Positions 7,550 to 41,020 of a stretch of DNA of 64,000 nt are shown here, piece after piece. The first letter of the stretch is position 1. The number at the start of each line of letters is the position of its first letter. The stretch comes from Macrostomum lignano (lineage: Eukaryota): assembly GCA_002269645.1 (NCBI GenBank), contig NIVC01002877.1, forward strand, positions 1 through 64,000, read 5' to 3'. A program made the position numbers and the translations under genes. The notes beneath the pieces were generated by a model. It ran no database searches. It worked only from the letters and a program-made list of their open reading frames with translations, and was not told the origin of the DNA.

Positions 7550-7672
7550 TTTTTTCTCTAACATAAAAAAAATTTTGAGGGTGACCACCCTGATAGAAAA
7601 GTTGAACTGTTTCTACATCCTATAAGTAGTGTTAGGTTTATGAAGCTGGATAAAGTGGGGTTTTAAACCTCA

Positions 7673-8128: not shown

Positions 8129-8144
8129 TTTTTATTTTAATATT

Positions 8145-9182
8145 TTAATTAATTTCTGTGTCAGCTGGTATCACTAGGAGTTCAGCTCTAGTGAATGACC
8201 GCGTGGGGGATTTAGGGTTAAAGGCTTGAGATAAAAAGTAATAGTCACCGGAGTCGGAGGTAAAATGTCTGTCTATTTTATGTACATCAAGGCTGAAGTA
8301 TGGATCTGTAGCTGTTCTTTTGGTGTCCTTCTCTAGCTCTCCAGGTAGATATAAAAAGCGTAGAAACTCAGAGTTTGTCAGTATGTATGGTGATTCAACT
8401 CCTGGAAGCTTAGGGTAGTTCGAGGTGTGTTTTGTGTTGTGTGTGTTGTGTGGGGTTGTAGTGTTGTTGTCTGTTCTTTGAGTTGCCTTAAGTTTGACAG
8501 TGTCTTGTTTAATTGCATGGGATGGTTTCAATCCAGTCATACGTGTGACTTCATTGTTCAGTTGCTCTATAACAGTGGGGAGCCGGTCTGACCACTTGGT
8601 ATAGTACTGACCACTTTTTAGTTTCAGCTCTTCAGCTGTCTGCTTAGTGAATAGCCTCTTGGCTAGAGTTAGATTGAATCTTTCCACAAAAGCCTAGTCT
8701 CTGTGCAAGTTTGTTCTGCCATAGCGAATCTCTGTGTTTTTCTTTTCCATAAGGGATTTCACTACACCCATGAATTCCTTACCCGGGTCGGTCATAAAGA
8801 TTTGGGGGTATGTGAGTGGAGAGTTTTTATAAATATCTTGCAGTGCGCTGGCAACAACCTCTGACTTCTTCGTCTTGAGTGGGCGAGCTTCCTTATATCT
8901 GGAAGCAATGTCAATAATTGTAAGAGCATACTTGTAGCCTGAGTCGTTGGGGAGAAACAAAAGATCTGCTTGGTGCGCTTCATTAGGTTTATAAATACTG
9001 AAATGGGGCCTTTCAAATTTTACTGGTGGGAAATAGACTTGAAAGACAGCCTGCTTAGAGAGCCATTTTTCTACTGTAGCTTTTGGCTCTTTACTCAGCT
9101 CCATGAGTTTACTAACAGCATTTTTGCCTACAAAGAATCCTTTGTCGCTGTAGTAGAGTTTTTTAAGTTTCTGATCTGTCAT
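8145..9182 (-). pseudogene. rve-family retroviral-like integrase with one in-frame TAG at 8694-8696
   Basis: HQADLLFL (D), YALTIIDIASRY, FMTDPGKEF (D), HRD*AFVERFN (E). The two ORFs are in frame across the stop. Confidence 0.92.
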
Positions 9183-9212
9183 ATATTTAAAAAGAAAATT
9201 TTAAATAAAATA

Positions 9213-9662
9213 ATGCAACGCTCTGGTGGTAAAATAGATTCACATGGACTGATAGAAAAGCTTCCTCGTCCAAACAAAGGCTGGACACTTCCCGGCTATA
9301 AATATTGCGGGCCTTTGAATCCACTTGAAATACAGTTAGATAAAAACAATAATCCACATCCTGGGCATGAGCCTGTGAACGAGCTAGACTCTGTCTGCAT
9401 GTGGCACGACGTTAAATATAGAGATTTTCCTGAGGAGAAGAATCGCTGGGACAAAGAAATGCTTAAGAGACTAGACAATATAGGGGCTTCAAGCGGATTT
9501 CGTGAGTCGATCGCTCGGAAGCTAGTTAAAGCTGTTATTTTTGGTAAAACAAAGTTGGGGTTGGGGGTTGGTTTGGGAGAAGGGGTGGGCTTTGCGTTGC
9601 ACGCACCAAGTAAAGAATTAGGAAGACTGTTGAAAGAGCTGGGGGTTGAGAGAGCAGAATGA
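9213..9662 (+). CDS. Parvovirus VP1u-like phospholipase A2 (PLA2X)
   Basis: LPGYKYCGP calcium loop and PVNELDSVCMWHDVKY catalytic HD motif; probable start MQRSGG at 9213. Confidence 0.88.
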   Translation: MQRSGGKIDSHGLIEKLPRPNKGWTLPGYKYCGPLNPLEIQLDKNNNPHPGHEPVNELDSVCMWHDVKYRDFPEEKNRWDKEMLKRLDNIGASSGFRESIARKLVKAVIFGKTKLGLGVGLGEGVGFALHAPSKELGRLLKELGVERAE

Positions 9663-10007
9663 TTCAAGTAAGAAAATTCAGCTGGATTAGCGGGTGTTTG
9701 GGAGAAGAGAGAACCGGGAGGGGGATTTGCATTGCACACGCCAAATAGAGACTGCGTACATCGACAGTGAATTTCCCAGTATTTGAGGTGGTTTTCCGAC
9801 AGTTTTCCGGCAGTTTTCCGACAGTTTTTGTTGAGCAAAAAAAATCCGACAGTTTGTCGGATATTTGTCGCAAACAAAAACTCATTATCTACTAATAGTA
9901 GTCCTAGCATATAGTACTCCTATATAGTACTCCTTATAGTAGTGGGTGTTGATTTCAACGGTGAAGAGTTCGTATTGACGTTGATCATTGAGAGAATGTG
10001 AGAAAAA

Positions 10008-10248
10008 TTACAACTGCCTTATAACTTCAGCAAAGTTATAATAGCTGTCAAAATTGTTAATGACTACTCCGTGTTTTTCAAACCAGTGAGATTTAAGTGC
10101 TTTATTAATATTAGGGACATTGATATCAACATCGGGCCAATATTTTCTCATGTATTCGTTGCATTCTAGTTTGCATCGGTACTTACTCTTGTAGTTAGGC
10201 TCGTGCGCTTTGTAATAAGAACCTGGAGAGACAACTGGAAACATTTTT
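10008..10248 (-). CDS. Small hypothetical ORF (MFPVVSPGSYY...), possibly part of the Polinton
   Basis: ATG preceded by an A-rich leader like other Polinton genes; no recognised family. Confidence 0.3.
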
Positions 10249-10480
10249 ATTGAGAATTTATTTTTTTTCAAAGGGTAAGGACCCTGGGTTAGGGGATTTA
10301 AAGTTTTAGGGATCTGGTAGCATGTTGCGAATCGAATGTGGGCCCCATGGGGAGAAGAATGCAGATTATTTTCTGATTGTTTCGAAGATGCTATGGGTGG
10401 ATGTTGGTGGATTATGTCTGTGTCAGTGAGCATAACAGGTGTCCACAGTGAGCATAACAGGTATCAGTGGACACCTGCTC

Positions 10481-10700
10481 TGATTCTGTCAGGGATAATA
10501 TGGATGGATTTAATAGGATTATGTTCGAAGTTTTCGGAGCAAGTGCGGCCCCTCCCCTTTTTCATGATTCTGTCAGGGATAATATGGATGGATTTAATGG
10601 GATTATGGAGGACGTTTTGTGAGCGAGTGCGACCCCCCCTTTTTTCTGATTCTGTCAGGGATAATATGGATGGATTTAATGGGATTATGGAGGATGTGAA
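10481..10700. repeat. ~83-bp tandem repeat, 3 copies (core TGATTCTGTCAGGGATAATATGGATGGATTTAAT)
   Basis: Core starts at 10481, 10565 and 10647. Confidence 0.9.
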
Positions 10701-10734
10701 AAATTTTGTCCCAGAAGCCCCCTCATGCCTTCTA

Positions 10735-10970
10735 CTGCTGTAGCTATTGTGTAGCACACCTGAAGGCTGCATATGGCTGTTCAGCCTAAGGACTAGGTCA
10801 CCAAACATACCCTCAATTACACCAGCTAATGCTGGTACACATTTTATAGCTGGGTAAACTGAAGTAATGCAGAGTAAAGTAGCTTGCTCAAGGACACCAA
10901 TTGTCCTAATGGGATTGGGAATTGAATCCTTGACTTTCAAGTTGTGAGTCTATGCTCTAAGCACTAGGCT
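10735..10970 (-). mobile_element. tRNA-derived CORE (MIR-like) SINE
   Basis: Minus strand reads GCCTAGTGCTTAGAGC (A box), GGATTCAATTCCC (B box-like), then CTTGAGCAAGCTACTTTACTCTGC...CAGTTTACCCAGCTATAAAATG, similar to the MIR CORE. Confidence 0.75.
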
Positions 10971-18695: not shown

Positions 18696-21600
18696 TTAGC
18701 GGACGCAGCCTCGCAGTCGGCCTCGCGGAGGCCTTGCCAACCAGCTGCACTTTTGCAACTCGCACCCGTCTCTCCGCGGCAGCCAGCAGATGGTTGCGAA
18801 TCGAGCTGTCTCGCCTTGCATGCAGATGCGCCGCTTTGAGCTCGAGAACCTGGTCGCCATGGTCGGGTCTAATCGTCTGACCGCTGATCGTTCCTCATTC
18901 ATGCTAACGACTGTGCTCCGACCAGTCACCCTTTGTCCATGCCACCAGCTGTCAACCTCCGTCAGCTGCTTCGCTGAAGTTCCTTGAGACAACGCATCAG
19001 CTGGATGGAATTCGGTCGTGACACACCTCCACTGGTCCGGATCTGTGACAAACTTGGTCTCTCCAATGCGGTTCGCACCAAACGGCTGGTCAAATTTAAA
19101 GGTGCACTCTTTCCGATCGCTTCTTAATTCTACACCAAGCGTCTTGATGGATGGCATCGGTGTCCATTCCAATGTTACTTCGGCTACTCGATCTTCTGGT
19201 GGCACTCTGCTCAACAATTCTCGCGAATTGGACATCCATTTCCTGGAGTGCATGCCTGCACGCTCCCAGCGAGTCTTCAACTCTTGAAACAGCTGGATCG
19301 CCTCAGCCTCTGACCCGACCGAATCTAAACAATCGTCCATATAGGTGGAGTTGAGAACAGCGTCTGCAGCTAATGGCAGCTCTTCTTTCAGGCGTTCCGC
19401 ATGCTCACGAACTACGAACTGAGCAAGAAACGGCGAGCTCGAGTTGCCGAAAACGATGCGTTTGGTCTCAAAAATTTCAACAGGCTTGCTAGAGTCCATC
19501 TCACGGCATAGAAAGCTATGCGTCGGCCTGTCCTCTGGCGCCATTTCGATCTGGAGGTACATCTCGGAGATGTCACAAGCCACAGCCACTGCATCTCTCC
19601 TGAAGCGAAGCAGAACGTCAAACAATTCTCGCTGAAGCTTCGGCCCTGGGAAGACCAGAAAGTTTAACGACTTTTCGTTCCCGCCCGCCGAGGCATCGAA
19701 GACGATTCGAACCTTTTTCGTCAGCTTGTCGAATCGAATGATCGGAAAATGCAGCAGAAAACACCTTCTGGCTGTGAACCCCTCTACTGCAACGTGCCGA
19801 ATGTAGCCTTGTTGCCCATATCGCTCTAGGCATGCTTGGTATTGCTTTGCCACCTCCAGATCCTTCTTCAACCGGGTCTCCGTGTTACAAAGCTGTATGA
19901 TCGCCATCTCATAGTTATTCGAGCGAACTTTCGCCTCTGGCTTCCACGGAATTCCCACCTGGTATCGGCCGTTTGTTAGCTTTAATGAAGACTTGGCTTG
20001 CTCGACTACAGCTTGCTCATCCGCTGTCCAATTTTGATCTTGAGCTGGCCGGATTTCTTCGACCTCCCAGAACTTGCGCAGCACTGGTGACAGCATCTCC
20101 TCGCTGGTGACACAGAAAAATGTGCTGGCCAAGTTTGTCTGATGCTGAATCTGTTCTACTGGACCCACACCTGTCCATCCAAGGGGAGTCAAACGTGCCT
20201 GTGGCTCCCCAGGGCCACCGCGAACTTCTCGGTAAGACACGTGTAACTCCGCATGATCTACTCCTATCAGCAGGTCTATGAGATGCGGCGCATGGAGCTG
20301 AGGAAATGGAAATACGCTCCAGATGTTTCCAATCCACTGCTGTCGTCTGCCAATCCGTGGCCTTCAGCTTCCCGGTGACACTGTCTGTCGTGAATGCCGT
20401 GATAGGACGACTCAGACTTCCATCTACACTTTCGAGCGTCATCGTAACCGGAGCTGTCAAGAATGCCTCTGTCTGTCCGTTCAAAACGTTCACTTTCAGT
20501 CGCTCCACATTGCCCTCCAGTCCCAGAGCTTCAGCAATCTCTGCATTCACATACGTCCTTGTACTCGCGTCGTCCAACAGTGCGTTCACCTTCACTACAC
20601 GGCCGCCTGCCTTGAGAACTACTGGAACTGTTCGCAGCGACGTTGCACTTCCACTTCCTGCCATCATAGTTACGGCGGCTCCTTTGCGACCCGACTCAGC
20701 GCTCTTTTTGCCTCCTTCGGTCGGAGAATTCTTCTTCGACTCAGTTTTTGCAGCCTCGTCAGAATGCAGCAAGCGGTGGTGAAACTTGTTGCATTCACCT
20801 ATTCCACATCGGCGTCCATGACGGCATATCCGAGCAGCATGACCGCGAGCTAAGCAGAAAAGCATGATTTCGAATCTTGCGCAGCCTTCCACCGATTTTC
20901 AATTGACAGCTGTCTAAATGTTGGACACTTCCACAGCTCATGTTGATCTTGACACAGCAAACAAGATTTTGACGGAGACGCTTGTTGATTATCTGCAAGA
21001 AACGTTTTGGACCGCGTCTCCTTCTTAACCTTCTTTTCACTCGTCACACCGTGCACAATCTCCATGGCTTCTGTCTGGAAAGCGGCCTCCATCAGCACCC
21101 ACTCACGTAACATCTTTACGCTCTCTTGCCTATGTCCTTCGAATAGCCAACGCCGGTAACGCGCCACCATCTGCTCAGGGAGCTTCTTCTGCAACTTTGC
21201 GTACAACAACCCGTCAGTCAATTCTGAGACCTTACCAGACTCTCGAGATTGACAACTGCGACATCTAACAGATTAGAGAATTGCTTAAGCTCTTTTGCAT
21301 TGGTGGAGCGGATGGGTGGAAAGTTATCGAGCTCTTCAAGATACAGAGCGATACGTCGGCGGCTGCCCCCAAATTCGCGTTCCAACCTGTCTTTGGCAGC
21401 CTCGTAAGCAGCGGCAGAGTGACCCAGATGTTCGACTAATTTCAAAGCCGGCCCTTGAAGATATTGACGGAGTTGAAGCAATATGAACTCCGGCTTGGCA
21501 GGAGCTCTATCAATACAAGCAGTAAAGGCGGCTTTCCAAGATTCGTACTGCTGCTTTTCGCCGCCGAACTTTGGGATCTCTACACGCCGAAGCATCTTCC

Positions 21601-21982
21601 AAAGATCCTTTGCTAACTCGGCTTCACCGCTGCTAGTCTGAGAATGGCCCGCCTCACTTACAGAGTCATCAATACTACTGGCACTCACAACCGGCATTGC
21701 CGTAGCCGCAGTCGCCGCCGTCGTCGCCGTCGTTGCAGTCGCCGCAGTCGCGGCAGTCGCCACAGGCGCAGCAGTCACGGCAGTCTGATGAGCAGTGATG
21801 AATTGAGTGACACATTTCATAGTGTCTTGAAACTGCTGCTCCACTTGATCCAGCTCGTCCAGAAGTTTGTCTCGAGCTTCTTCTGTGGCTTCTTGCTGAA
21901 GGAGCTCATCATAGAATTTATCAAGTAGCTTCACGCACTCATGCTGCAGTGGCTGCATCGCACGCTTGCTGGATCGCTTCAT
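18696..21982 (-). pseudogene. BEL/Pao gag-protease-RT, frameshifted
   Basis: Gag with DUF1759-like IPKFGG...W..F, Cys/His knuckles (CLLCQDQHELWKC; CRHGRRCGIGECNKFHHRLLH), protease ALLDDAS, RT VFDAS / DISEMYLQI / YMDD, and an RNase H tail QWR.V.T..HPADALS. Confidence 0.9.
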
Positions 21983-22542: not shown

Positions 22543-22705
22543 TTAATTGTTAATGAAAGTATGACAAAGGAATAAGGTATGCCTTCTGAATGTTATCCAG
22601 TGGCCATGTGTTATATTTGATGAATAAAATCCGCTTTGAAATCATCAAGTTGTCGTCAATGCGAGCGGACATGATAATTACCATTGTTTATTTCAGTACG
22701 CCAAA

Positions 22706-25700
22706 CTACCCAGCATATAGTGCAAATTCAGCTAAGCTGACTTCTCTTCTGTCCCTTTCGTTATAACTATGGTTGATCTTCATATATTTCACATTCGAAG
22801 CAGCGCACTCGTGCATTGAGTACGGATGCACAAAGTCTGTGTGGATGTAACATCGAGTAAGCTCTTGTTTATTGGAATTATATAGAGTGATTTGCAGATT
22901 TCTGGAAGACGAAACATCGTAATATTTTCTGGGCCAAACGATGAAGCTTTTTACTTTATTCGCCACTTGGTCGAGTGTGTACTGCCAGTGACCGCGGTAC
23001 TCTTGAGTGCCAGCCGGTGCGTGGAGTATGTGAATTGTTACTCCGTATGTGTTCACATCGTTATCGATAGTTTTTTCACACTCGTCAAAGCTCGGATCGC
23101 ATCTCATGCGTATCTTGCCTGAAAGAATGTTAGTATGAGTATTCGTATGGGTCAAACTGTACTTCAGTAAAAGCAGTAAACACTAGTTTTTAGCTATATA
23201 CAGCTCCAGTTTACTTACGGTAACATTTATCGGTGCCAAAGGTAGACCCAGAGTTGGGGCACAGGTCACAATGCGCCATTCCAATACGGCGTTTCAGAGC
23301 GAAGTTCAAATCACAATTGTGGCATCCTTTGGCACCGGATTCGCTGACGTACGTGCCAGCGGGACATTTCGAGCACTCGCTGCTGCCTGAGCTGTTTGAG
23401 AAAGTGCCTGCAGGGCACAGAGTGCAGTTAGCAGCGTTTCCAACTGAGAATGAGCCTCCTTTGCACAGCTGGCAAGATGCAGAGCCAGCGTTACTCCAGC
23501 TTCCAGCAGGGCACTGGCTGCAGTTGGTTGAGCCCACTCGGTCAGCAAAGGTCCCAGAAGGACAAACGGTGCATTCCGATGCAGCAGCATCGGAAAACTT
23601 CCCCAGCGGACACATTCTCTGCTCCGAACGGCCTTCCGTGTCGACGTACCACCCTGGCATGGCGCTCTTACAGTGCGTCTGGTTTGCCAGTGGCTGGTAG
23701 AATCCCCGGGGACACGGGGTGCAAGAAGCTGATCCGGCGCGACTGGAATAGCTGCCTTTGGCACAAAAAGTGCAATTTACCGATCCCGCGCTGGGATTGA
23801 ACGAGCCTGCAGGGCACTGGCTGCAGTTTGTTGAGGATATTTGGTCAGCAAAGCTCCCAGCAGGGCACGGGGTGCAAGAAGCTGACCCAGCCCTACTGGA
23901 ATAGCTGCCTTCGGCACACGAAGTGCAGTTTACCGATCCCGCGCTGGGAGTAAACGAGCCTGCAGGGCACTTGGCGCAAGGGATGCCCTCGGCTGGACTG
24001 AACTCGCCCCTCTTGCAGTTGTTGGCGCAGCTCACTGAGCCCTCAGCACTCGACGTTCCAGCAGGGCAAGCACTGCAAGATTTCTGCCCTGGATTGTCGG
24101 CGAAGAACCCCGATGAGCACAACTGGCACTGCGCCTGTCTCTCTGCTTTATTGAACTGTCCGACTGGACATGGAGTGCACTCCGTTTGACCTCGCTGAGC
24201 TGCGAACAAGCCGGCACTGCAGGCCCCGCACGAAGTTGATCCGTTAAACCTGCTCGCTGTTCCAACATGGCACTTCTGGCACTGTACCGATCCTGGCTTG
24301 GAAGCGAAATTTCCTGGACTGCAGAGCATGCAATTCACAGTCGCTTGTGATGCAGAAAAACTTCCAGGAGCGCATGCCAAGCAGTTATGATTTCCCGTTG
24401 TGTTCTTGAAATTTCCTGGTTGGCAGGGCACACACAGGTTTTCCTTGCTGTCACTCAGTTGGTAGCCAACTGGACACTCTGGCAAGCACTGCACTGTCCT
24501 GACTCTTCTGCCCCCAATAGAATTCCACAATTCAACGCGCGAATTGCGACACTGGAAGCAGCTCGTGTCATCTTTTGCTAGATTGCAGTCGATGCACTCT
24601 TTGTGACAATCCAGGATGCAGTGACCATCAACCAGCTTGTAGTTATTGTTCAAACACTCCACCTGCGGCATGTCCTTGGTGAGGTGAATGTCCATCAGCG
24701 ACACAGACTTCGAGCCCGCTCCGAACGTGTAGAAAGACAGGCGGCTGTACTGACTGTCCGATCGGAACTTGTACCCAGAGTAGACGGTGCCGATCTCGCT
24801 GTTCGAGCCCGCCTTACCGAACTGCATTAGAACTGATCCATTGGCCTGATTCACACACAAGAAGTAAGACTGGTACAGGTTCTTGTCTCCAAGTGTCCCC
24901 ATTCCCTTCTGATAGTCTCTCTTTTGCGGTTTCATTGCTTTGTAGAATATCACTCCATCCATATTGATCTGCAGGTAGTACCATGTTGTGTGGTCTCTTG
25001 GTATGGACGCGAATATAACAAAGATGTCTCCAGCAGTCGCAGCCGTAAAGTAAAGACAGTTTTCTTCCCGATCAGGGTCCAGTCTGTGAGAGTTCAACCA
25101 CCGAACGTTGCACGGAATTGACGCCGCATCAGTCGAGTCTGTGCCTTTTTGTCCTTCTACCCGAGAAGCCCTAGCAACAGTGGTACCTTCTATCCAATCT
25201 GGAAAGGTTGGGTTGCGGCGCTTTGATGCAATAAAGTCCAGCGGATCGATATGGAAGAAGCCTGTCTCCTCCTCATAGGTGAGGATGATGCTCCAGATAC
25301 AGATCTTAGTCTCAGCTGGCTTGAAGCCTTCGAGCTGACAGCCTTCGTACAGGTGTGCATGATGATGCCCTGGCTCAGTCGCAAACCACCTGTTTTTTAG
25401 ATAAGTCATCACATACTTGGCTTGCGATTTCAACAAGTTCGGAATATCCTGAGGCAGATCAAATGAGATTAAAAACGGGGATTTCTTGAGCTGCAGAAAC
25501 GTCAGTGTGTTGTTATTTGAGTTGAACACGTCGATCTTGGCCAGTGTAGAGCTCTCACAACCGGGTTGCCCTGCTTTCAACTCGTGCGAGGAAGTTGGGA
25601 AAGGACCTTCCGTCATGTACGCAGCTACGGCCTTCTCCAGTGAGAGTCTTCGTCTCTTTAGAGCGTTCTTAAAGTTTTCCTGGTTCTTGTATTTGCAGTA

Positions 25701-27440
25701 GATTTTAACCAATTTAGTTTTAGTCTTATTGTTAGCAAAGTAAGTCTCCTCATCGAGGTAGTAGCGACGACGAGTTTTGGGCTCCGTCAAAATATTCACT
25801 TTGCTTCCCGCACTTCCAATACAGCCAAAGTCGCGGTTTCCAGCCGGAAACAGGTCGTCCATGTTCATGTCGAACAGCTGATCGATGGGCTTCAGCTTGA
25901 ACTCGAACGGCTTCACATAGTCATTGATGGAGGCGATCCACCTGTGGTACAGCTGCTTGAATGCCGGAGTGTAAAAGTCAATGAGGGCTTCTGCGATCTC
26001 CGGAGTTCCTCCCTGAGCCTCGACGGTTGTCTGAGTAAACTCGGACTCGCTGGAACTGTGAGACTCTTGATTATGTTCTTTTCTTGTGCTTCTGTGCTGG
26101 CTCTCCAACCTTTCACTGCTCGATTTTGTTGTAGTCGTTTTCTTGGGGCCAAGACCCAAAAAGCCCGTCCGGGTGGTTTTCTGAGAATTTTTTGACTGCA
26201 GCGATGAAAACATTGACTGGAACTCGGTCTCAGCCAGACTGGCAAACTCTTCCGACGACGCAAACTTGTTTGTCTTTGCTCTCTTTGTGATTTTTAGCTG
26301 ACCGCCGAACTTTCCAGACCGGATAAAATGCGTGCCCCAGCGTAGCAGAAAGTCTTGAAATTTGCTGGCAGCGCCCACTGAAAAGTAGGACTCTGGAAGA
26401 CTCATGTAGTCTCTGAGCGCAGCGAAGTTTATGTCATTAGGCTTCACATCATCCAGTGAAATTTTGTACATGATTACACTCACATACATGATGGCAAAGA
26501 AATCCTCAGTAGAACCTTGTTTTCTTGTAGCCTGGGAATACTGTAAATTTACTGAGGCTGATTGACTGCTAGTGGTTGTTGACGAGCTGCCAGAGCTCTG
26601 CCGCCCCGCCTTAGAAGTGCTGTGCTGGCGAGATTCGCTTAAGAACAAATTTCGCTGCTCTGACAGACCGGCTTTGTCCCTGATGTAGCTCATGTACTCG
26701 TCCGCAGACCGGAACGACTTGGTCTCAGCTGTGGTCTCGAAGATGCCATACACGTTCATGGTGTCGGGCACGTCCTTGTCCAGAAAGCTGCCCATGTTGG
26801 AACAGTAGCGCTGCACCAGACTGGCTTTGCGGCTCTCGATCTTGTAGAATCCTCGTCCGTCGAAGCCGACGCCGATGTACGCGGCAGCGTCCAGGAGGTT
26901 CATGCAGATTGTATTGCCATTGCCAGGAACCTTGCTGGAGTAGCACTTGCTAGTCTTGGGATAGGATGCACCTGTGCACCCATTCATCAACACCGGACCA
27001 ACCCCCATTGGATAGACATAGACGGGCATCTTGTCTTCTGCCTCTTCCTTCATTTTTTCAGGCTCGCCCACAGTCTCCGTCATCACCCAATTCGAAGGCT
27101 GATAGTTGGAGAATCCGTTGAAGCCCTGCTCGGCCTGCAGACTGATGGATCTCGTGCCTGCTTTCTGCGTTTTTGCCGAGCGGTCTGTCAGCATGTTTTT
27201 TAGAATTTCCTTGGTGATGAGTGGGGTGGCTTGACCGTCAGTTGATTGCGTGAGATCATCCAGCAAGTCCTTGGTCTTCTTGTCTGAGTTGCTGATTGCG
27301 TTTGCAATCGCGTCTACAGCCGGACCGTACTGCTCCAGGGCGTTGGCATCGACAGTCTTGCTGGTGTCTTTTTCTGCAGCTTCAACTTGAAGAAATCCAA
27401 GCAATGCAATTGCGATCACTGCAGCCAGACAGGCGTGCAT
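22706..27440 (-). CDS. Secreted MACPF-domain protein with Cys-rich ephrin-receptor-like (GCC2/GCC3) repeats; exons 27440..23219 and 23118..22706, ~1544 aa
   Basis: Signal peptide MHACLAAVIAIALLGFLQVEA; MACPF signature WGTHFIRSGKFGG; many CPAG(S/T)F repeats. A 100-nt intron (GTAAGT ... CTAAC ... TTTCAG) in phase 1 joins the 149-aa ORF in frame. Confidence 0.9.
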
Positions 27441-28192: not shown

Positions 28193-28721
28193 CTGCTGTC
28201 CCCTGGCTAACTTTAAAACTGAAGTCCGTGCACTCGCTGCTGTCCCCTGGCTAACTTCAAAACTGAAGTCCGTGCACTCGCTGCTGTCCCCTGGCTAACT
28301 TCAAAACTGAAGTCCGTGCACTCGCTGCTGTCCCCTGGCTAACTTCAAAACTGAAGTCCGTGCACTCGCTGCTGTCCCCTGGCTAACTTCAAAACTGAAG
28401 TCAGTGCACTCGCTGCTGTTCCCTGGCTAACTTCAAAACTGAAGTCCGTGCACTCGCTGCTGTCCCCTGGCTAACTTCAAAACTGAAGTCCGTGCACTCG
28501 CTGCTGTCCCCTGGCTAACTTCAAAACTGAAGTCAGTGCACTCGCTGCTGTCCCCTGGCTAACTTCAAAACTGAAGTCAGTGCACTCGCTGCTGTCCCCT
28601 GGCTAACTTCAAAACTGAAGTCAGTGCACTCGCTGCTGTCCCCTGGCTAACTTCAAAACTGAAGTCCGTGCACTCGCTGCTGTCCCCTGGCTAACTTCAA
28701 AACTGAAGTTAGTGCACTCGC
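28193..28721. repeat. 44-bp tandem repeat, about 12 copies
   Basis: Unit CTGCTGTCCCCTGGCTAACTTCAAAACTGAAGTCCGTGCACTCG. Confidence 0.95.
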
Positions 28722-28949
28722 TTGAACTCGAAAAAATTATACCCTATTCTGGGGTATCAATGGGAAAAATAGTGCCCCAAATCAGTTGACTATTAACCCT
28801 TGGGGTACTAATTGGGGAAAAAAGAACCCTGCCACAGAGTCGTACGGAACTACTCGAGCAGTCTGGTCCCAGTGACTGTAAGTGACCGTGGCAACCTGGT
28901 CTGCACACGAGCTTGGGTTGGCCTCTGGCTCTCAAACACGACAAGAGAA

Positions 28950-29953
28950 ATGGGGAAGGAGAGGGATGGGGAAGGAGAGGGATGGGGAAGGAGAGGGATG
29001 GGGAAGGAGAGGGATGGGGAAGGAGAGGGATGGTGAAGGAGAGGGATGGGGAAGGAGAGGGATGGGGAAGGAGAGGGATGGGGAAGGAGAGGGATGGGGA
29101 AGGACAGAGATAGGGAAGGAGAGGGATGGGGAAGGAGAGGGATGGGGAAGGAGAGGGATGGTGAAGGAGAGGGATGGGGAAGGAGACGGATGGGGAAGGA
29201 GAGGGATGGGGAAGGAGAGGGATGGGGAAGGAGAGGGATGGGGAAGGGATCGGTAAGAAGAGGGATGGGGAAGAGATGGGTAAGAAGAGGGATGGGGAAG
29301 GAGAGGGATGGGGAAGGACAGAGATAGGGAAGGAGAGGGATGGGGAAGGAGAGGGATGGGGAAGGAGAGGGATGGGGAAGGAGAGGGATGGGGAAGGAGA
29401 GGGATGGGGAAGGAGAGGGATGGGGAAGGAGAGGGATGGGGAAGGAGAGGGATGGGGAAGGAGAGGGATGGGGAAGGAGAGGGATGGGGAAGGAGAGGGA
29501 TGGGGAAGGGATCGGTAAGAAGAGGGATGGGGAAGGGATGGGTAAGAAGAGGGATGGGGAAGGAGAGGGATGGGGAAGGAGAGGGATGGGGAAGGACAGA
29601 GATAGGGAAGGAGAGGGATGGGGAAGGAGAGGGATGGGGAAGGACAGAGATAGGGAAGGAGAGGGATGGGGAAGGAGAGGGATGGGGAAGGAGAGGGATG
29701 GGGAAGGGATCGGTAAGAAGAGGGATGGGGAAGGGATCGGTAAGAAGAGGGATGGGGAAGGAGAGGGATGGGGAAGGAGAGGGATGGGGAAGGACAGAGA
29801 TAGGGAAGGAGAGGGATGGGGAAGGAGAGGGATGGGGAAGGAGAGGGATGGGGAAGGAGAGGGATGGGGAAGGGATCGGTAAGAAGAGGGATGGGGAAGG
29901 GATGGGTAAGAAGAGGGATGGGGAAGGAGAGGGATGGGGAAGGAGAGGGATGG
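28950..29953. repeat. ~1-kb purine-rich 16-bp minisatellite (TGGGGAAGGAGAGGGA)n
   Basis: Read directly; the long Pro-rich and Gly-rich ORFs in all frames are artefacts of the repeat. Confidence 0.95.
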
Positions 29954-31164: not shown

Positions 31165-31775
31165 CCTTCGCAGCTCAAAAATTTTCCAAGTTTTTTTACT
31201 TTCTTTGAGTTTTTCTAACTTAGAAACGCTTCTAATAAAATGCAAAAAACAAGAATATAATTGCAAACATTTGCAATTACAATATCCTTACAATATCCGC
31301 TCGAAACTTCCCACTTCCCAAGCTCGAAACTTCCCACTTCCCAAGCTCGAAACTTCCCACTTATTGTAAGGAATGCAAATGTTTGCAATTATGTTCTTGT
31401 TTTTTGCATTTCTTAAGCGAACTAGCGTTCCTAAAATTTACTTCTAATAAAAAACCTTTACACCTACTAAAAAATTCAATTCGACTTAGGTTATGACCTA
31501 ATTTATTTCTCAGTCGGTCAGTATGAGTCTCCATTAAGGCTAGCAATATGGTTTCTCAATCTAAATCAAGCCAAAGTTGAGATGCAGATTCCACACCGTG
31601 ACGAAATTCAAGTGGAACTCAGCCAGCATGACGATAAGTATGATAAAAGCCTGTTGTGATGCAGAGTCAGAGTTCAGTCAGTCATTTTTTCTACAATTTT
31701 TTCACTGCATTTCGAGTCGAAAAGCCAGCTTAACCTTTGCAAATAGCATGTTTTTCGAAATTCACTCACTCGAAG

Positions 31776-32360
31776 CATCAAGTCAAACATAATAGAGGCA
31801 CCATGTAAAACATAAGCGAAGCGTCATGTCAAACATAATAGAGGCACCATGTAAAACATAAGCGAAACGTCATGTCAAACATAATAGAGGCACCATGTAA
31901 AACATAAGCGAAGCCTCATGTCAAACATAATAGAGGCACCATGTAAAACATAAGCGAAGCGTCATGTCAAACATAATAGAGGCACCATGTAAAACATAAG
32001 CGAAACGTCATGTCAAACATAATAGAGGCACCATGTAAAACATAAGCGAAGCGTCATGTCAAACATAATAGAGGCACCATGTAAAACATAAGCGAAGCGT
32101 CATGTTAAACATAATAGAGGCACCATGTAAAACATAAGCGAAGCGTCATGTTAAACATAATAGAGGCACCATGTAAAACATAAGCGAAGCGTCATGTTAA
32201 ACATAATAGAGGCACCATGTAAAACATAAGTGAAGCGTCAAGTCAAACATAATAAAAGCGTCATGTAAAACATAAGCGAAGCGTCAAGTCAAACATAATA
32301 AAAGCGTCATGTAAAACATAAGCGAAGCGTCATGTCAAACATAATAAAAGCGTCATGTTA
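31776..32360. repeat. 46-bp tandem repeat, ~10 copies, decaying into shorter variants
   Basis: Unit GTCATGTCAAACATAATAGAGGCACCATGTAAAACATAAGCGAAGC. Confidence 0.95.
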
Positions 32361-33264: not shown

Positions 33265-34257
33265 ATGAGTTTGCGTAGGATGACTGTAAATCAGCTACGT
33301 GAAGAATTGACAGATAGGGGCCTGAGCACACACGGCTACAAGAAAGACCTGGCCAGCAGACTCTCCACTGCGATGAACCAGAGCGAAGCAGCTAGTCGGC
33401 GGGAACAAGCGGCGTCAAACTCCGCGGAGACCGACAGCGAAGGTCGGCGGCAGCAGCAGCAACAACGGCTGGAGGCAGGGGAGGCGCTGGACCTAGCAGA
33501 GCTCCGGTGGAAGATAGCTAGCCTGGAATCGGAGACGGCAGCAATGCGCCAGCAGCTGGAAGGCCGATTTAGACCAGGTGAGGTGGACCAACAGCTTCTT
33601 AATGAGCCCTCTGATTGTAGTAGCGACATGAATATCCCGAGTATGCTCAGAGGTCCCGGGTTCGAGACCAGGCTCGAGCCCTCAGTAGCTCAACTAGGGC
33701 TACGGGCGGCACCACTCGTCGTTGCGGATTTCTGCGGTTGCGACCCTCGGACGGCGTCGGCGAGTCGTAGGGAAAAGGTGCTGCATCCAACCGCCAATCA
33801 GCCTAAACCCGAATCGCTGGGAATCGGTCAGTGGATAGTCGGCAACGCGCGCATCCTCGACGCCCTGATCTCTAGGGGACAGCTCGACCTGGAAGGCGTT
33901 CGGCAGTACTTGCAGTACAGTGTGCAGATCGGTGAGCTGGTCGAGGCAGGTTACGACACCACCAGGATCATGCGGTTTGACGACGCATTTAGAAGAGAGC
34001 AGCAGGCGGGCATGCAAGACTGGGCGCGACCGAGTTTCTCGCTGGTGGCACGGCACCTCATCGCCCCGCAGCAGACTCCACAACATGCCCGTTCTCGCAT
34101 GGACAGGAAGATTCCTATGGTTCAAGGAGCGCCCGTCTGCCTCAAGTTCAACACCCGTGGTGGCTGCAAGTTCCAGAATTGCAAGTACACTCATGCGTGC
34201 CGAGTCTGCTTGCGCTCGGACCACAGCGAGACGCAACACGCGGCAAAAAACGAATAG
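33265..34257 (+). CDS. Gag-like ORF1 with N-terminal SAP motif, coiled coil and C-terminal Cys/His finger
   Basis: MTVNQLREELTDRGLSTHGYKKDLASRL (SAP-like); VCLKFNTRGGCKFQNCKYTHACRVC...H. Confidence 0.88.
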   Translation: MSLRRMTVNQLREELTDRGLSTHGYKKDLASRLSTAMNQSEAASRREQAASNSAETDSEGRRQQQQQRLEAGEALDLAELRWKIASLESETAAMRQQLEGRFRPGEVDQQLLNEPSDCSSDMNIPSMLRGPGFETRLEPSVAQLGLRAAPLVVADFCGCDPRTASASRREKVLHPTANQPKPESLGIGQWIVGNARILDALISRGQLDLEGVRQYLQYSVQIGELVEAGYDTTRIMRFDDAFRREQQAGMQDWARPSFSLVARHLIAPQQTPQHARSRMDRKIPMVQGAPVCLKFNTRGGCKFQNCKYTHACRVCLRSDHSETQHAAKNE

Positions 34258-36089
34258 CCGCGGCTCCAGTGGCCTCGGCAAGCTGGCAGCCGCAAATTTT
34301 AATCCCAAGTTTTTACTCCATTCGCGACATCAATTTCAATCCGAGTGGCTCCCTTGACGCAAATGCCTGGGCGAAGGAGCTGAACGGCGACCCCAACGGG
34401 CCTTTTTTAATTGACGGAGTCCAAAACGGCTTCGCGCTCACTACTGAAACAGATTTTAAGCCTTCCGAAGTTGAGAACTACTCGTCCGCCATTGAGTACA
34501 AGACGCTGGTTGAAGAGCAATTGCAGCGTGAGATCGCCAGCGGGCGGTATGTGTCAGTCAGCCGACGCCCGTGCAAGATCTCAGCGCTTGGTGCCATCCC
34601 GAAAGAGGACGGTGGAGTCCGTATCATCCACGACTGCAGTCGTCCGGAAGGCTGTGCGGTCAACGACCACTTTATCGCAGACCACAAGATTAAGTTTGAA
34701 ACGGTTAGCGGCCTCTGCTCACAACTCAAGCCCGGTGACTTCACGGCCAAGATCGATCTCAAGGAGGCGTATCGCTCAGTGGGTGTTCATCCTTCTTCTC
34801 TCGACGCTCTGGGCATCAAATGGCAATTTAGCGGCGACAGTGAGCCTACCTACCTGGTCGACACCCGGCTGAGCTTCGGCGCTGCGGCCTCGGTGTACCA
34901 TTTCAACAGGCTGTCTAAGGCGGTGGTGCGCATGATGCAACGGCGCGGGTTCACCTGCATTGGCTACCTCGACGACTTCGCTGTGGCCGGGAGCACCTAC
35001 GAGTCCTGTGTCGAGGCTTACGAGAGCTTGAGGAGCCTGGCGACGAGCCTCGGTTTCACCATCAACGAAAAGAAGTCTAGCGGGCCGTCGCGGCGCACGG
35101 TTCTCCTGGGCGTCCTGATTGACACAGAGTCGGGGATGCTGAGCATCCCACCGGCCAAGCTCAGTGCACTCAAAGACGCACTTGGGAGCTGCTTGCATCG
35201 ACGCGGTGCCATCAGCAAGCGCGACCTTCAGCGGATCTGCGGCAAGCTGTCCTGGGTGAGCAGCGTGACCAGGAAAGGCCGAGCTTCCATCCGCCCTCTA
35301 CTGATGCTGGCGAGCCGGGCGACTAGACCTGGGGACAAATTGCGGCTGACCCCGCACCTCACTGAGCTGCTGCACTGGTGGAGGAGAAGCCTTCAGTCCG
35401 TTGGCTGCGCGCCCATCTGGCCTCGCTACGCTCGAAGGATCGTCATCGAGACTGACGCCTGCAACTCGGGTGGTGCCTGCATTGTTCGGGAGGCCAATAA
35501 ATCCGACTGGCTCTACATCAACTGGAAGAACGACGCTGGTGGCCGTTTTGCTTCGGCCCACATCAACGTTAAGGAGACCATCACGCCTGTCCTCAGCATC
35601 CTCGCGGCCCCGGGCCGCTTCGCCGGTGCGGACATCGTCGTGTACAGCGATAGCTCGGCAGCTGTCGGTGCGCTGAACAAGCTCAGCTCGCCATGTAACG
35701 ACGTCAACCGGCTCCTGCACACGCTGTCGCTTGCCTGCGACGCGTGGGGTCTGCGGCTGCGGGCCTTTCACGTTCCAGGCGCCTTCCAGGTCCTGGCGGA
35801 CCCGGCCTCTCGCCTTGCTTCTAGAAGCGGGGCGCAGAATTTCTTTCTCCGCTTCTACCGTAGCCTGCATGATTTAGCTGCTGAATCCTGCTGCATCTCG
35901 CGCCACGCACTCTGCCCTGCCTCCGCCTCCCTTTTGCTTTTGCAGGTCCGGCGCCTCCTGCCTCCCGCCTACCCGGGCCGCTCCTTCGCTTTCTCGCCGA
36001 CGCCTGGGCTCCTAGTACGAGGGCATCGTACGCTTCAAACCTCGAACAGTGGCAGCGCTTCTGCAACCTCGAAGGTGTTCAGCCACTAG
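34179..36089 (+). CDS. Reverse transcriptase-RNase H (ORF2)
   Basis: KIDLKEAYR, RLSFG, YLDD; RNase H motifs IETDAC, HINVKE, VYSDS and VLADPASR. Confidence 0.95.
   Translation: MQVHSCVPSLLALGPQRDATRGKKRIAAAPVASASWQPQILIPSFYSIRDINFNPSGSLDANAWAKELNGDPNGPFLIDGVQNGFALTTETDFKPSEVENYSSAIEYKTLVEEQLQREIASGRYVSVSRRPCKISALGAIPKEDGGVRIIHDCSRPEGCAVNDHFIADHKIKFETVSGLCSQLKPGDFTAKIDLKEAYRSVGVHPSSLDALGIKWQFSGDSEPTYLVDTRLSFGAAASVYHFNRLSKAVVRMMQRRGFTCIGYLDDFAVAGSTYESCVEAYESLRSLATSLGFTINEKKSSGPSRRTVLLGVLIDTESGMLSIPPAKLSALKDALGSCLHRRGAISKRDLQRICGKLSWVSSVTRKGRASIRPLLMLASRATRPGDKLRLTPHLTELLHWWRRSLQSVGCAPIWPRYARRIVIETDACNSGGACIVREANKSDWLYINWKNDAGGRFASAHINVKETITPVLSILAAPGRFAGADIVVYSDSSAAVGALNKLSSPCNDVNRLLHTLSLACDAWGLRLRAFHVPGAFQVLADPASRLASRSGAQNFFLRFYRSLHDLAAESCCISRHALCPASASLLLLQVRRLLPPAYPGRSFAFSPTPGLLVRGHRTLQTSNSGSASATSKVFSH
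34245..34293 (+). promoter_or_regulatory. Predicted -1 ribosomal frameshift signal
   Basis: Heptamer A AAA AAC (34245-34251) in the ORF1 frame, 8-nt spacer, then stem GCGGCTCCAG / CTGGCAGCCGC; the -1 frame is ORF2. Confidence 0.7.
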
Positions 36090-36958
36090 CGGCGTCCCCG
36101 GTGCACTTGGTCGAGTATGTGCGACGCCTGGCTAAGCGCGGCGTGGCACCCGGTAGCCTCGGTGGACACCTGGCAGCCATCAGCTGGAGCTTCAAGCTGG
36201 CGCAACTCCCCGACATCACCAAGTCCGGCCTGATCGATCTGGCAGTTAAGAGCGCCAAACTGACAAGCGGCCATTCAGTCAAGCAGAAAGACCCCATCAC
36301 CCCGGCTGTTCTGCTTTCACTGGCAAACCAGGTGAACCCAAGAGACCCTGCAGACGCCGCCTTTTGGGCCGCCGTGCTCTGCTGCTTCTGGGCGCTTCTC
36401 AGGAAAGCAAATGTCTGCGGGCGCCACTCCATTCTCGTCGGCGACACTCAGGCCGATAGTCAGTGCTGGAGACTCCGAGTTCGACAGTCGAAGACCAACC
36501 AATGCGGACAAGACTACCAGGAGGCGGTGCTGCCAGCGCTCGGAAGCCACCCACTATGCCCTGTCCAAGCCCTGCGGCGGCATTTTCAGACTAACAAGCT
36601 GCGGTCTGCGCCGGCGCTCACTCGGCTGTTTTGCGTCCACATCGCCGGAAGCTGGTGCCCGATGTCATCGCGTCAATTCGACCGCCGCCTCGCTCGGGCT
36701 CTGACAGATGCGGGTTGGGCGGCGACAGCTTTCTCAGGCCACTCTCTACGACGGGGTGGCGCCTGTCTGGCGTTCGACAGCGGCCTCGACGTGGAGCAGA
36801 TCAAGCGGCTGGGCGGCTGGCGCAGCGGCGCCGTTTCACGCTACCTGCCGCAGTCGGGAGGTTGCCTCCGTCTCCTGCGCCCAATGGTCAACCGTGTGCT
36901 GTCGGCACCTCCTAGCGCTCGCCTGACTCGCCCCGTCGCCGTGTACCCTACTTTTTAA
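35946..36958 (+). CDS. Tyrosine recombinase (ORF3); frame open from ~35885, overlapping RNase H
   Basis: AWAPSTRASY N-terminal domain upstream of the called GTG start; catalytic LLRK, KT, GHSLRRGGA and GGWRSGAVSRY. Confidence 0.93.
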
Positions 36959-38827: not shown

Positions 38828-39716
38828 GCAGTCCCAACATTTTCTTTCAGTTAATTCCGTAGATGATCAGTTTGTATCCAATACAATCAGCAAACTTCAG
38901 TGCTCAGTGCACCGCAGACAGTTGCAGCTATGGTGAAGCGGTGGCATTCAAAGAGGGACTCGATTTAGTTCGAGTGCAGAGCGAAACTTCTCATCAGAAA
39001 AGTTCAGAAGGGAGAATAAGTCCGACCTGAGCCTTGTAGCTTCGCTAGACGCAACTAGAAAACCGCGAGACATCCCATCCCGACTCCGCTCTTTAAAACG
39101 CCTAGAAATACACGTACAGGCGAGATCGCATTGCATCATTTCTGAATAAAAAGCAATTGCAACACCTTTGTTGCAGGTACGGATAGCCACGAAAGTGTGA
39201 CCGTCATTTGGATCAAGCAGTGCTGCGGCGAGTTGAACTGCAAAACATTCTGGCAACCGATTGTGACAACGAGAGATAATACATAAATGGGAAGTTAAAG
39301 TTTTTTATATAAATATATCGCTGCTGCAGACTTAACTGAATTTTATGCTGCCACTGTTTTAACATTCAAATTTAGTATTTATAATTAATAATCCTGATAA
39401 CTATGCATATAATACTTTTAGTTTATTTTTTCCACATACATGTAATAGCTCGAATTGAATTGATTGATTTAGAATGTTTCATTGTATAAAGCTTTTAAGA
39501 TTTTAAGAAACAATTAACTACTCGTACCCAAGAAAGTAGTATATTAGGAATTTTTCAGACCCAAAGTACGAGCGTATATCTGAATTCAATTTACGAGGTG
39601 GATATTGTATTTGTGCATAAGTTCTACGGGTATGGCCTTTTCTTCTAGGAGCCTACCGCATCGATTTGGCAGCGGCTAACGAGAGCTGCGGCAAAAAAAC
39701 GGAAAAAAGCCGAGCG

Positions 39717-41020
39717 TTCAATCTCTTTACTGGACCTTGTGACGGCTCTTAGAGAGCCGAGTCTTCAATCTCTTTACTGGACCTTGTGACGGCTCTTAGA
39801 GAGCCGAGTCTTCAATCTCTTTACTGGACCTTGTGACGGCTCTTAGAGAGCCGGGCCTTCAATCTCTTTACTGGACCTTGTGACGGCTCTTAGAGAGCCG
39901 AGTCTTCAATCTCTTTACTGGACCTTGTGACGGCTCTTAGAGAGCCGAGTCTTCAATCTCTTTACTGGACCTTGTGACGGCTCTTAGAGAGCCGAGTCTT
40001 CAATCTCTTTACTGGACCTTGTGCCGGCTCTTAGAGAGCCGAGTCTTCAATCTCTTTACTGGACCTTGTGACGGCTCTTAGAGAGCCGAGTCTTCAATCT
40101 CTTTACTGGACCTTGTGACGGCTCTTAGAGAGCCGAGTCTTCAATCTCTTTACTGGACCTTGTGACGGCTCTTAGAGAGCCGAGCCTTCAATCTCTTTAC
40201 TGGATCTTGTGACGGCTCTTAGAGAGCCGAGTCTTCAATCTCTTTACTGGACCTTGTGCTGGCTCTTAGAGAGCCGAGTCTTCAATCTCTTTACTGGACC
40301 TTGTGCTGGCTCTTAGAGCCGAGCCTTCAATCTCTTTACTGGAACTTGTGACGGCTCTTAGAGAGCCGAGCCTTCAATCTCTTTACTGGACCTTGTGCCG
40401 GCTCTTAGAGAGCCGGGCCTTCAATCTCTTTACTGGACCTTGTGACGGCTCTAAGAGAGCCGAGCCTTCAATCTCTTTACTGGACCTTGTGACGGCTCTA
40501 AGAGAGCCGGGCCTTCAATCTCTTTACTGGACCTTGTGACGGCTCTTAGAGAGCCGAGCCTTCAATCTCTTTACTGGACCTTGTGACGGCTCTAAGAGAG
40601 CCGAGCCTTCAATCTCTTTACTGGACCTTGTGACGGCTCTTAGAGAGCCGAGCCTTCAATCTCTTTACTGGACCTTGTGACGGCTCTAAGAGAGCCGAGC
40701 CTTCAATCTCTTTACTGGAACTTGTGACGGCTCTTAGAGAGCCGGGCCTTCAATCTCTTTACTGGACCTTGTGACGGCTCTAAGAGAGCCGAGCCTTCAA
40801 TCTCTTTACTGGACCTTGTGACGGCTCTAAGAGAGCCGGGCCTTCAATCTCTTTACTGGACCTTGTGACGGCTCTTAGAGAGCCGAGCCTTCAATCTCTT
40901 TACTGGACCTTGTGACGGCTCTAAGAGAGCCGAGCCTTCAATCTCTTTACTGGACCTTGTGACGGCTCTTAGAGAGCCGAGCCTTCAATCTCTTTACTGG
41001 ACCTTGTGACGGCTCTTAGA
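39717..41020. repeat. 47-bp tandem repeat, ~27 copies, each with a 7-bp hairpin
   Basis: Unit TTCAATCTCTTTACTGGACCTTGTGACGGCTCTTAGAGAGCCGAG(T/C)C; stem CGGCTCT/AGAGCCG. Confidence 0.95.

Follow-up and report, generated by a model that had tools for sequence, protein, structure and literature searches.

The 64,000-nucleotide stretch of Macrostomum lignano DNA described here (positions 1 to 64,000 of contig NIVC01002877.1), referred to throughout as the window, carries on its minus strand a real, intact two-exon gene for a 1544-amino acid MACPF protein. The first ~930 amino acids, termed the head, define, to judge from sequence comparison, an old and unnamed animal MACPF subfamily in which the head is conserved and the tails behind it, of sugar-binding type, are interchangeable. 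The domain string proposed in an earlier note made from the DNA letters, running from a signal peptide through MACPF, a region of no assigned type, a β-domain, a furin-like Cys module and a repeat stalk to a C-terminal β-domain, is essentially right by Pfam, AlphaFold2 (AF2)/Foldseek and profile matches and needs small corrections. There is about an even chance that the product is a secreted, soluble defense effector of ~165 kDa from this ancient subfamily, which would be tethered to glycans and assemble through its MACPF domain.

The coding sequence read from the window DNA is 27440..23219 joined to 23118..22706, with a spliced length of 4635 nt encoding 1544 amino acids and a stop codon (coordinates of all features are collected in Table 1). 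The start ATG lies at 27438-27440 and the open reading frame (ORF) continues down to the GTAAGT donor at 23218; the chance of an uninterrupted 1414-codon ORF in DNA of 48% GC is ~(61/64)^1414, so that this frame is far beyond chance. The splice junction, reading TDKCYR on one side and KIRM(R/K)CDPSF on the other, recurs in P0001, an NCBI M. lignano protein that is 95% identical to the window protein and has an N-terminally truncated gene model, and in P0194, a UniRef fragment identical to the window protein across the junction. Re-reading of the DNA reproduced the gene coordinates, the intron at 23119-23218 and the spliced length given in the earlier note, and tblastn finds no second copy of the gene within the 64-kb window.

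P0001 is encoded at a second locus, L001 (contig NIVC01004190.1 of the assembly GCA_002269645.1), which is collinear with the window over ~22.5-31 kb and ~95% identical to it, and which is on these grounds an allelic or duplicated copy. The ratio of nonsynonymous to synonymous substitution rates (dN/dS) against L001 is 0.27 overall (residues 318-1544) at a dS of ~0.10. By region it is 0.09 for the post-MACPF part (residues 531-930), 0.35 for the stalk, 0.43 for exon 2 and 0.37 for the N-terminal third, values that indicate purifying selection with the post-MACPF region as the most constrained part of the protein. The overall value argues against the window gene being a pseudogene. A paralogue, P0003, is found on the Logan contig SRR30276812_16463 (L002, 4934 nt) in a single ORF of 1523 codons without interruption, between a 219-nt leader and a 143-nt trailer and with no intron before the C-terminal domain; the contig begins with an adapter-like TTCCGATCT. 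L002, from a sequencing-run assembly, is probably an assembled macrostomid transcript, and its untranslated regions and lack of introns suggest transcription of a family member in a macrostomid.

The N-terminal peptide of the window protein is the sole strongly hydrophobic 19-mer (mean Kyte-Doolittle value of 2.2) outside a β-sandwich core strand, and signal-like peptides also begin the paralogues P0002 and P0003. A hydrophobicity scan locates no transmembrane anchor in the window protein, the N-terminal peptide being the sole candidate membrane segment, and by this heuristic the protein should be secreted and not membrane-anchored. The extension that follows has predicted local distance difference test (pLDDT) values mostly below 50 in AF2 (26-47 per 10-residue block) and is kept among the Macrostomum paralogues inspected.

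The MACPF domain is matched by PF01823 with 54 bits against a cut-off of 21.5, and all 39 aligned family members match the same model. YIGVGFDGRG is present at residues 188-197, the signature residues Gly-369, Thr-370, His-371, Phe-378, Gly-379 and Gly-380 are invariant across the 39 sequences, and GVGF, RxGTH and FGG are family-invariant motifs. The AF2 model of the head, built on 39 homologues (mean pLDDT 61, predicted template modeling (TM) score 0.44, ordered parts mostly 60-89), has four long core strands at residues 228-243, 313-329, 371-389 and 470-476, with helical, low-confidence clusters (pLDDT <50) placed between core strands at residues 246-311 and 396-465. The best Foldseek match of this model is perforin (PDB code 3nsj, 2e-10), followed by others that include Mpf2Ba1, GNIP1Aa, C6, Plu-MACPF, C9 and MPEG-1; the probability is 1.0 to perforin, C6, C9, MPEG-1, Mpf2Ba1 and GNIP1Aa, and all 46 PDB matches at E ≤0.001 are MACPF-family structures except two stonustoxin chains. 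The MACPF call of the earlier note is therefore upheld by the PF01823 score, the signature motif and the perforin-like fold. Sequence-level alignment to C8 alpha, GNIP1Aa and C9 is limited to ~80 residues around the signature, and the window MACPF is by sequence a very divergent branch.

The first 930 amino acids retrieve about 40 proteins with most alignments covering 80-100% of the query, and the 39 aligned homologues cover 57-100% of it. The best matches are M. lignano proteins. Macrostomum contributes four paralogues (54-95% identity) to the set and amphioxus many proteins (33-36%); corals, sea anemones and the acorn worm, a hemichordate, follow at 30-35%, and there are also some metagenome sequences without assignment. 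In 34 of the 39 homologues the post-MACPF region spans 379-425 amino acids. Its profile, run against 1.84 billion representatives, matches 345 clusters (50% identity) with an E cut-off of 1e-3, of which 88 also reach E ≤1e-30; in full-length proteins the match lies at about residues 550-960, behind an N-terminal stretch of MACPF size. Look-up of ten of these clusters adds the brachiopod Lingula, and a bdelloid rotifer protein matches the β-sandwich part only. The tails after the head are lineage-specific, vary from one gene to the next and are composed of recognition modules, with Ephrin_rec_like, F5/8C, pentaxin, LamG, C-type lectin, SRCR, fn2, kringle and fibrinogen C domains as well as SUEL lectin, HYR, Sushi and Ca-binding EGF. 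In the amphioxus protein P0010 the domain types follow each other as they do in the window protein (MACPF, Ephrin_rec_like, C-terminal F5/8C), and the architecture is thus not unique to the window gene. The earlier note had considered the architecture foreign to perforin, C6-9, MPEG1, astrotactin and apextrin; the domain content bears this out, but the protein belongs to an unnamed family and is not a one-off, the same ~930-residue head being found in amphioxus, coral, anemone, hemichordate and brachiopod proteins. The named homologues all carry placeholder names only. In the literature searched, no paper names or studies this MACPF subfamily and none mentions MACPF together with Ephrin_rec_like; the topically closest papers treat other MACPF groups, namely MPEG1 (PMC10781884, PMC7424014), TX-60-type MACs (PMC11090067), Ci-MACPF1 (PMC6109156) and C6-like proteins (PMC11312191).

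Directly C-terminal to the MACPF fold, the AF2 sub-model of residues 531-770 (mean pLDDT 75.6, mostly 63-91 per block with low-confidence loops) shows a long β-hairpin, a 25-residue helix and mixed α/β elements. This region has no Pfam match, no PDB sequence match and no Foldseek match attributable to it; a PDB sequence search with the post-MACPF profile gives nothing even at E ≤10, and Pfam scans of the separate segments 1-272, 478-763 and 770-930 at E ≤10 give noise only. The β-sandwich that follows matches galectins, neurexin LNS domains, legume lectins and LMAN1 in Foldseek (E ~1e-3, probability ~1, target TM score 0.52-0.61). A farnesoic acid O-methyltransferase-like domain had been suggested here in the earlier note and is supported only so far as the fold is a lectin-type β-sandwich; PF12248, the model of that domain, has no match in the window protein at E ≤10 and is matched by only 1 of 21 family members (E 0.018). 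The ConA/galectin-like fold of the model leaves homology to PF12248 undecided by fold alone. A search for relatives of the sandwich outside the family returns only short unannotated fragments, apparently exon-level pieces of family genes.

The Cys-rich module between the sandwich and the stalk has a Cys pattern conserved in the family, as expected for the furin-like module called in the earlier note, but scores below threshold with PF00757 (14.3 bits against a cut-off of 26.8, E 0.038, across 26 residues). The family profile weakly matches ErbB-2 domain IV, insulin-receptor-related protein and R-spondin (E 0.06-4.7), and the furin-like resemblance appears confined to the level of the Cys pattern. 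The stalk is a clear Ephrin_rec_like array, with PF07699 matching 12-13 stretches at E 6e-52 to 3e-57 (174-191 bits against a cut-off of 23.1); it also scores strongly against PF23091 and NCD3G, and there is a weak side-match to Giardia VSP. Its 19 CxxCxxG modules follow a strict 17-residue (51-nt) period, and the earlier count of more than 15 modules stands for CxxCxxG, whereas the CxxCPxG form then specified occurs in only 10 of the 19. Seed-based repeat finding detects in the stalk DNA the 51-nt period and an internal 153-nt duplication at 88% identity, from which it follows that blocks of three modules are duplicated as the stalk grows; Tandem Repeats Finder detects nothing in the same DNA.

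The C-terminal β-domain encoded by exon 2 had been called weakly discoidin/galactose-binding-like. The window copy has no Pfam match, but the equivalent domain of the paralogue P0002 matches PF00754 at E 6e-4 (20.3 bits against a cut-off of 28.2, positions 13-126 of 127), and a profile of four Macrostomum sequences matches over the full length the fucolectin-related structure 2j22 (E 0.001), the F5/8C structure 7jnb (E 0.005) and discoidin-type glucanase domains. Alignment with the F5/8C domains of the family itself by hhalign gives a probability of 46% (E 2e-4), and a paralogue fragment is labeled "F5/8 type C domain-containing" in UniRef. A profile search with the domain finds two Macrostomum fragments only. 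An iterated hidden Markov model of the true F5/8C domains of the family leaves the Macrostomum C-terminal domains unmatched at E ≤1e-3 and on relaxation reaches P0002 at E 6.9. These matches give weak to moderate support for a divergent galactose-binding-domain-like sandwich.

Compared with perforin, C6-C9 and MPEG1, the window protein shares a bent four-stranded sheet, two helical clusters at the positions of the transmembrane hairpins (TMH1 and TMH2), the (Y/W)G(T/S)H(F/Y)x6GG signature and predicted secretion, with sequence matches around the signature to C8 alpha (1.5e-5), C9 (3e-3) and perforin (0.13), and MPEG1 not found. It differs from them in having no TSP1, LDLa, EGF, C2, P2 or membrane anchor, in a family-specific 400-amino acid post-MACPF module and in much more polar hairpins; a Pfam scan of the window protein finds no TSP1, LDLa, EGF, C2, Fn3 or ApeC. 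Perforin-1 consists of MACPF followed by EGF and C2, whereas in the window protein EGF and C2 are unmatched and the first 240 residues after MACPF match nothing. The bacterial proteins Mpf2Ba1, GNIP1Aa and Plu-MACPF are among the best structural matches of the head (2e-9 to 2e-8). In the insecticidal Mpf2Ba1 and GNIP1Aa, the MACPF head carries one compact C-terminal β-rich receptor-binding domain directly beneath it; their PDB chains of ~450-540 residues have no Cys-rich stalk and no sequence likeness to the window protein outside the MACPF core. Ephrin_rec_like repeats occur in SCUBE, ELAPOR and SVEP1-type proteins, which share the repeated CxxCxxG units, but in the window protein the repeats join a MACPF head to a terminal β-sandwich. 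In the PV2 proteins of apple snails (PmPV2/PcPV2) a tachylectin-like chain is disulfide-linked to a MACPF chain. Two ancient immune proteins make up PmPV2, a dimeric toxin in which a carbohydrate-binding module delivers the MACPF (bioRxiv 10.1101/2019.12.23.880021); the window protein differs in being a single chain with another lectin-like fold and a long stalk.

C6-C9 carry TSP1 and LDLa before MACPF and EGF/TSP1 after it (PMC11312191), and none of these flanking domains (TSP1, LDLa, EGF) is found by Pfam in the window protein at E ≤1. MPEG1 has a P2 domain, a C-terminal transmembrane helix and a short cytosolic tail, and M. lignano is reported to have 13 MPEG1 genes (PMC10781884). Identity with MPEG1 was rejected, as there is no hydrophobic helix besides the signal peptide and the family profile matches no MPEG-1 chain at E ≤10; for the post-MACPF model, MPEG-1 is not among the 50 best Foldseek matches listed. 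Apextrin/ApeC-MACPF proteins and Ci-MACPF1 of Ciona, the most abundant protein of the gut barrier membrane (PMC6109156), are likewise secreted invertebrate MACPFs joined to microbe- or matrix-binding modules, but apextrins carry ApeC and Ci-MACPF1 carries TSP1 repeats and EGF, which the window protein does not have. TX-60-type nematocyst MACs (PMC11090067) and Ci-MACPF1 were rejected as counterparts because their architectures differ.

The most likely mechanism for such a glycan-tethered defense effector would begin with release of the protein into the extracellular space or mucus and capture of carbohydrate on a foreign surface by the terminal β-sandwich. The stalk would act as a tether or spacer, with an estimated length of a few tens of nanometers from the module size, and its CxxCxxG repeats would form a rigid, disulfide-laddered rod. 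The head would then oligomerize through the MACPF sheet, with the sandwich adjoining MACPF taking a membrane-proximal role like that of C2 in perforin; this sandwich, which every member has and which falls within the most constrained region, is a better candidate for membrane placement than the distant tip. Ancestrally, the family probably perforated membranes.

Several observations weigh against this reading. Window TMH1 and TMH2 are 18% hydrophobic and 16-27% charged, their best β-moments are no better than those of shuffled sequences (z = -0.3 and -0.9), and TMH1 carries a 129-bp (43-codon) in-frame deletion relative to L001. The ~400-residue rod would by estimate hold the MACPF tens of nanometers from the target of the tip, which is hard to reconcile with perforin or Mpf2Ba1, in which the membrane-binding C-terminal domain is compact. 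The F-type lectin fucose-binding motif is H-x24-R-x-D-x4-R/K. In an alignment by eye the motif is not exactly conserved, the window copy having H-x19-R-KYY-D-VSSS-R and P0003 R-T-D-CCPD-Q at this site, so that neither the spacing nor the final basic residue agrees. The AF2 model of the head is also of modest quality, non-lytic MACPF roles are known for sea-anemone MACs (PMC11090067), and the literature searched holds no expression, binding or lysis data for the window gene or its family. The suggestion of a glycan-targeted pore former made in the earlier note therefore survives in part: the MACPF fold is real and two β-sandwich domains resemble lectins at the level of the fold, but the hairpins are polar, 43 hydrophobic codons have been lost, the fucose motif is not exactly kept and no conserved sugar-binding residues are demonstrated.

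The hairpins differ widely within the family, with TMH1 ranging from 40 to 112 amino acids. In a short group, found in corals, anemones, the acorn worm and one amphioxus clade, TMH1 has 40 and TMH2 45 residues with alternating patterns such as SGSYFGFSAGVKAAWG, and the β-moment z values are 2.4-2.6. A long group (69-112 and 76-89 residues) with low-complexity Ser/Gly-rich inserts comprises Macrostomum, a second amphioxus clade and metagenome sequences, and Macrostomum joins the long-hairpin amphioxus clade in a neighbor-joining tree (midpoint-rooted, without support values). The window segments, which the earlier note had compared to pore-forming TMH regions, are Ser/Thr-rich (35-36% Ser plus Thr) and positioned between core strands as described, but they lack an alternating hydrophobic face, and in both the window protein is the least hydrophobic among twelve family members compared. 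The 129 extra bases of L001 encode a hydrophobic Gly/Ala/Ile-rich GFNLGAIGGIVGGAIGAIAGGPAGAALGAALGGAVGG-type sequence, and an equivalent Gly/Ala-rich TMH1 stretch occurs in the paralogues P0003 and P0004. In Macrostomum (L001:5754-5893, P0003 and P0004) this forms a ~40-residue stretch of Gly, Ala, Ile, Val and Leu, in which small-xxx-small spacing recurs and GGP occupies the center; it resembles a glycine-zipper helical hairpin more closely than an amphipathic β-hairpin. Such a hairpin would, if true, be unusual for a MACPF protein, and the window copy is without the stretch. Pore formation by the window copy is on this basis doubtful; its very polar hairpins and the loss of the hydrophobic TMH1 stretch suggest that its lytic activity may be weak, or that it may be a derivative that binds or agglutinates without lysing.

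The strongest alternative, tentative but with a real share of the probability, is that the protein is a non-lytic MACPF acting in recognition, agglutination, adhesion, matrix or mucus or in development, with the head as a scaffold for oligomerization or binding, as in astrotactins, BRINPs, Torso-like and anemone MACs. Astrotactins, BRINPs and Torso-like are MACPF proteins with signaling, adhesion or developmental, non-lytic roles, and like theirs the window hairpins are poorly suited to membranes, being low in complexity and variable in length across the family as well as polar. The window protein differs from astrotactins and other non-lytic MACPFs in having no transmembrane segment, Fn3 or annexin-like domains, and astrotactin-2 is a weak structural match to the head only (E ~1e-3). 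The loss of the hydrophobic stretch in frame while the remainder stays under purifying selection and the long stalk that keeps the tip far from the head both fit a non-lytic role, as does the developmental role of cnidarian MACPF paralogues, the endomesodermal MACs of the sea anemone Nematostella, which shows that MACPF proteins can be non-lytic (PMC11090067). Against a non-lytic role stand the MACPF core, in which every family-invariant residue is retained and the GG hinge pairs with them, the short-hairpin relatives with alternating hydrophobic patterns typical of membrane hairpins and the lectin/scavenger-type tails as in immune mosaic proteins.

It is rather improbable that the window copy and L001 are redundant copies in a partly duplicated genome, both losing function, with the intact ORF a transient state. 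L001 has an in-frame TAA at L001:5934-5936, within an A-run in the TMH1 region just after the extra 129 bases, and for this reason the P0001 gene model starts at a downstream ATG; the TAA may reflect either a genuine lesion or an error of assembly. P0001 also lacks six residues (WSIILT, window residues 715-720) located in a predicted β-strand of the constrained post-MACPF region. The proximity of the window deletion and the TAA (within ~100 bp of each other), the six missing residues of P0001 and the retroelements that flank the gene, with a BEL/Pao element starting ~700 bp downstream, would suit decay. Set against these are the open 1544-codon frame, the intact GT-AG sites and AATAAA hexamer, the low dN/dS values both overall and in the post-MACPF region, the exactly in-frame nature of the deletion and the A-run context of the L001 stop.

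Least probable, and quite unlikely, is an offensive cytolysin secreted against prey or predators like nematocyst TX-60-type MACPFs or the apple-snail lectin-MACPF egg toxin, since the family is expanded in amphioxus, Lingula and the acorn worm, non-venomous filter feeders in which immune mosaics are typical, M. lignano is not known to have a venom apparatus, and the polar hairpins of the window copy argue against strong lysis; in its favor are the combination of secretion, a MACPF domain and lectin-like modules and the documented lectin delivery of a MACPF toxin in PmPV2 (bioRxiv 10.1101/2019.12.23.880021).

For the defense-effector reading at the level of the family, a wider proposal is offered as tentative. 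It holds that the proteins form an undescribed subfamily that predates the cnidarian-bilaterian split and, with dozens of different lectin/scavenger tails joined to the conserved head by exon or domain shuffling, would provide a single-chain, pattern-recognition-directed perforation parallel to complement; a flatworm/amphioxus long-hairpin branch would have a Gly-rich, glycine-zipper-like TMH1 insert, with the window copy as a variant without it.

Table 1. Features of the M. lignano MACPF gene in the window
Feature	Residues	Window coordinates	Strand	Basis and remarks
Whole gene	1-1544	22706..27440	-	Two coding exons, 1544 amino acids + stop
Predicted signal peptide	1-21	27378..27440	-	MHACLAAVIAIALLGFLQVEA followed by AEK; hydrophobicity, cleavage site read from sequence
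N-terminal extension	22-145	27006..27377	-	Poorly modeled, differs between phyla
MACPF (structural sense)	~146-530	25851..27005	-	Pfam and AF2/Foldseek; Pfam model spans residues 294-524
TMH1-equivalent	246-311	26508..26705	-	Ser/Thr-rich, polar; holds deletion site ~26597-26607
MACPF signature	368-380	26301..26339	-	WGTHFIRSGKFGG; direct reading, agrees with (Y/W)-G-(T/S)-H-(F/Y)-x6-G-G
TMH2-equivalent	396-465	26046..26255	-	Ser/Thr-rich, 27% charged
Post-MACPF α/β region	531-770	25131..25850	-	Family-conserved, matches no known domain
ConA-like/galectin-like β-sandwich	~775-925	24666..25118	-	Foldseek
Furin-like/growth-factor-receptor-type Cys-rich module	929-1002	24435..24656	-	Cys pattern conserved in family consensus; weak
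Ephrin_rec_like stalk	1003-1409	23219..24434	-	19 CxxCxxG modules and a few degenerate two-Cys units
Intron		23119-23218	-	Phase 1, 100 nt, GTAAGT...TTTCAG
Exon 2, coding		23118-22709	-	Stop TAG at 22708-22706
C-terminal β-domain (exon 2)	~1410-1544	22709..23118	-	Divergent discoidin/F-type-lectin-like, putative
AATAAA hexamer		22687..22692	-	14 nt past stop codon, read directly

The surrounding window is rich in repeats, with retroelements, a G protein-coupled receptor gene and many tandem arrays. The BEL/Pao-type long terminal repeat retroelement has its ORFs on the minus strand at 18696-21982, ~700 bp downstream of the gene stop, with a gag-like DUF1759, a reverse transcriptase and an aspartyl protease match below the Pfam cut-off. 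A DIRS-like retroelement on the plus strand at 33265-36958 has SAP, reverse transcriptase and tyrosine recombinase (Phage_integrase) domains, and an intron-less 438-amino acid ORF at 50940-52256 (plus strand; 7tm_1, E 1e-20) encodes a rhodopsin-family receptor. Tandem arrays lie at 28193-28722 (44 nt x12, the unit also present in L001 with only ~1-3 units aligned there), 28950-29953 (16-nt G-rich unit x62), 31771-32346 (46 nt x12.5), 39708-41022 (47 nt x28) and 46631-49011 (32 nt x74); the last is open in all three frames, which accounts for the stacked ORFs at 46.6-49 kb. Long minus-strand ORFs of 150-343 amino acids each occupy 3865-10940, three of which were scanned and had no Pfam match, and this run could represent either a multi-exon gene or a repeat of unclassified type.

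MACPF proteins play central parts in animal immunity, and invertebrate members are little characterized beyond complement, perforin, MPEG1, apextrins and a few toxins. The subfamily described here spans corals to amphioxus and flatworms and combines an unmatched 400-residue module adjacent to MACPF under strong constraint with a recognition tail that is freely swapped. The long-hairpin TMH1 insert, if its reading is true, may be a different way into membranes, and M. lignano is amenable to RNA interference and transgenesis; naturally occurring forms that have or lack the hydrophobic TMH1 stretch offer a ready comparison of the function of this segment. The subfamily would, if true, also supply new accessory folds for structural work, and if the tails do choose the targets of perforation it would represent a simple and ancient alternative to the lectin-complement route.

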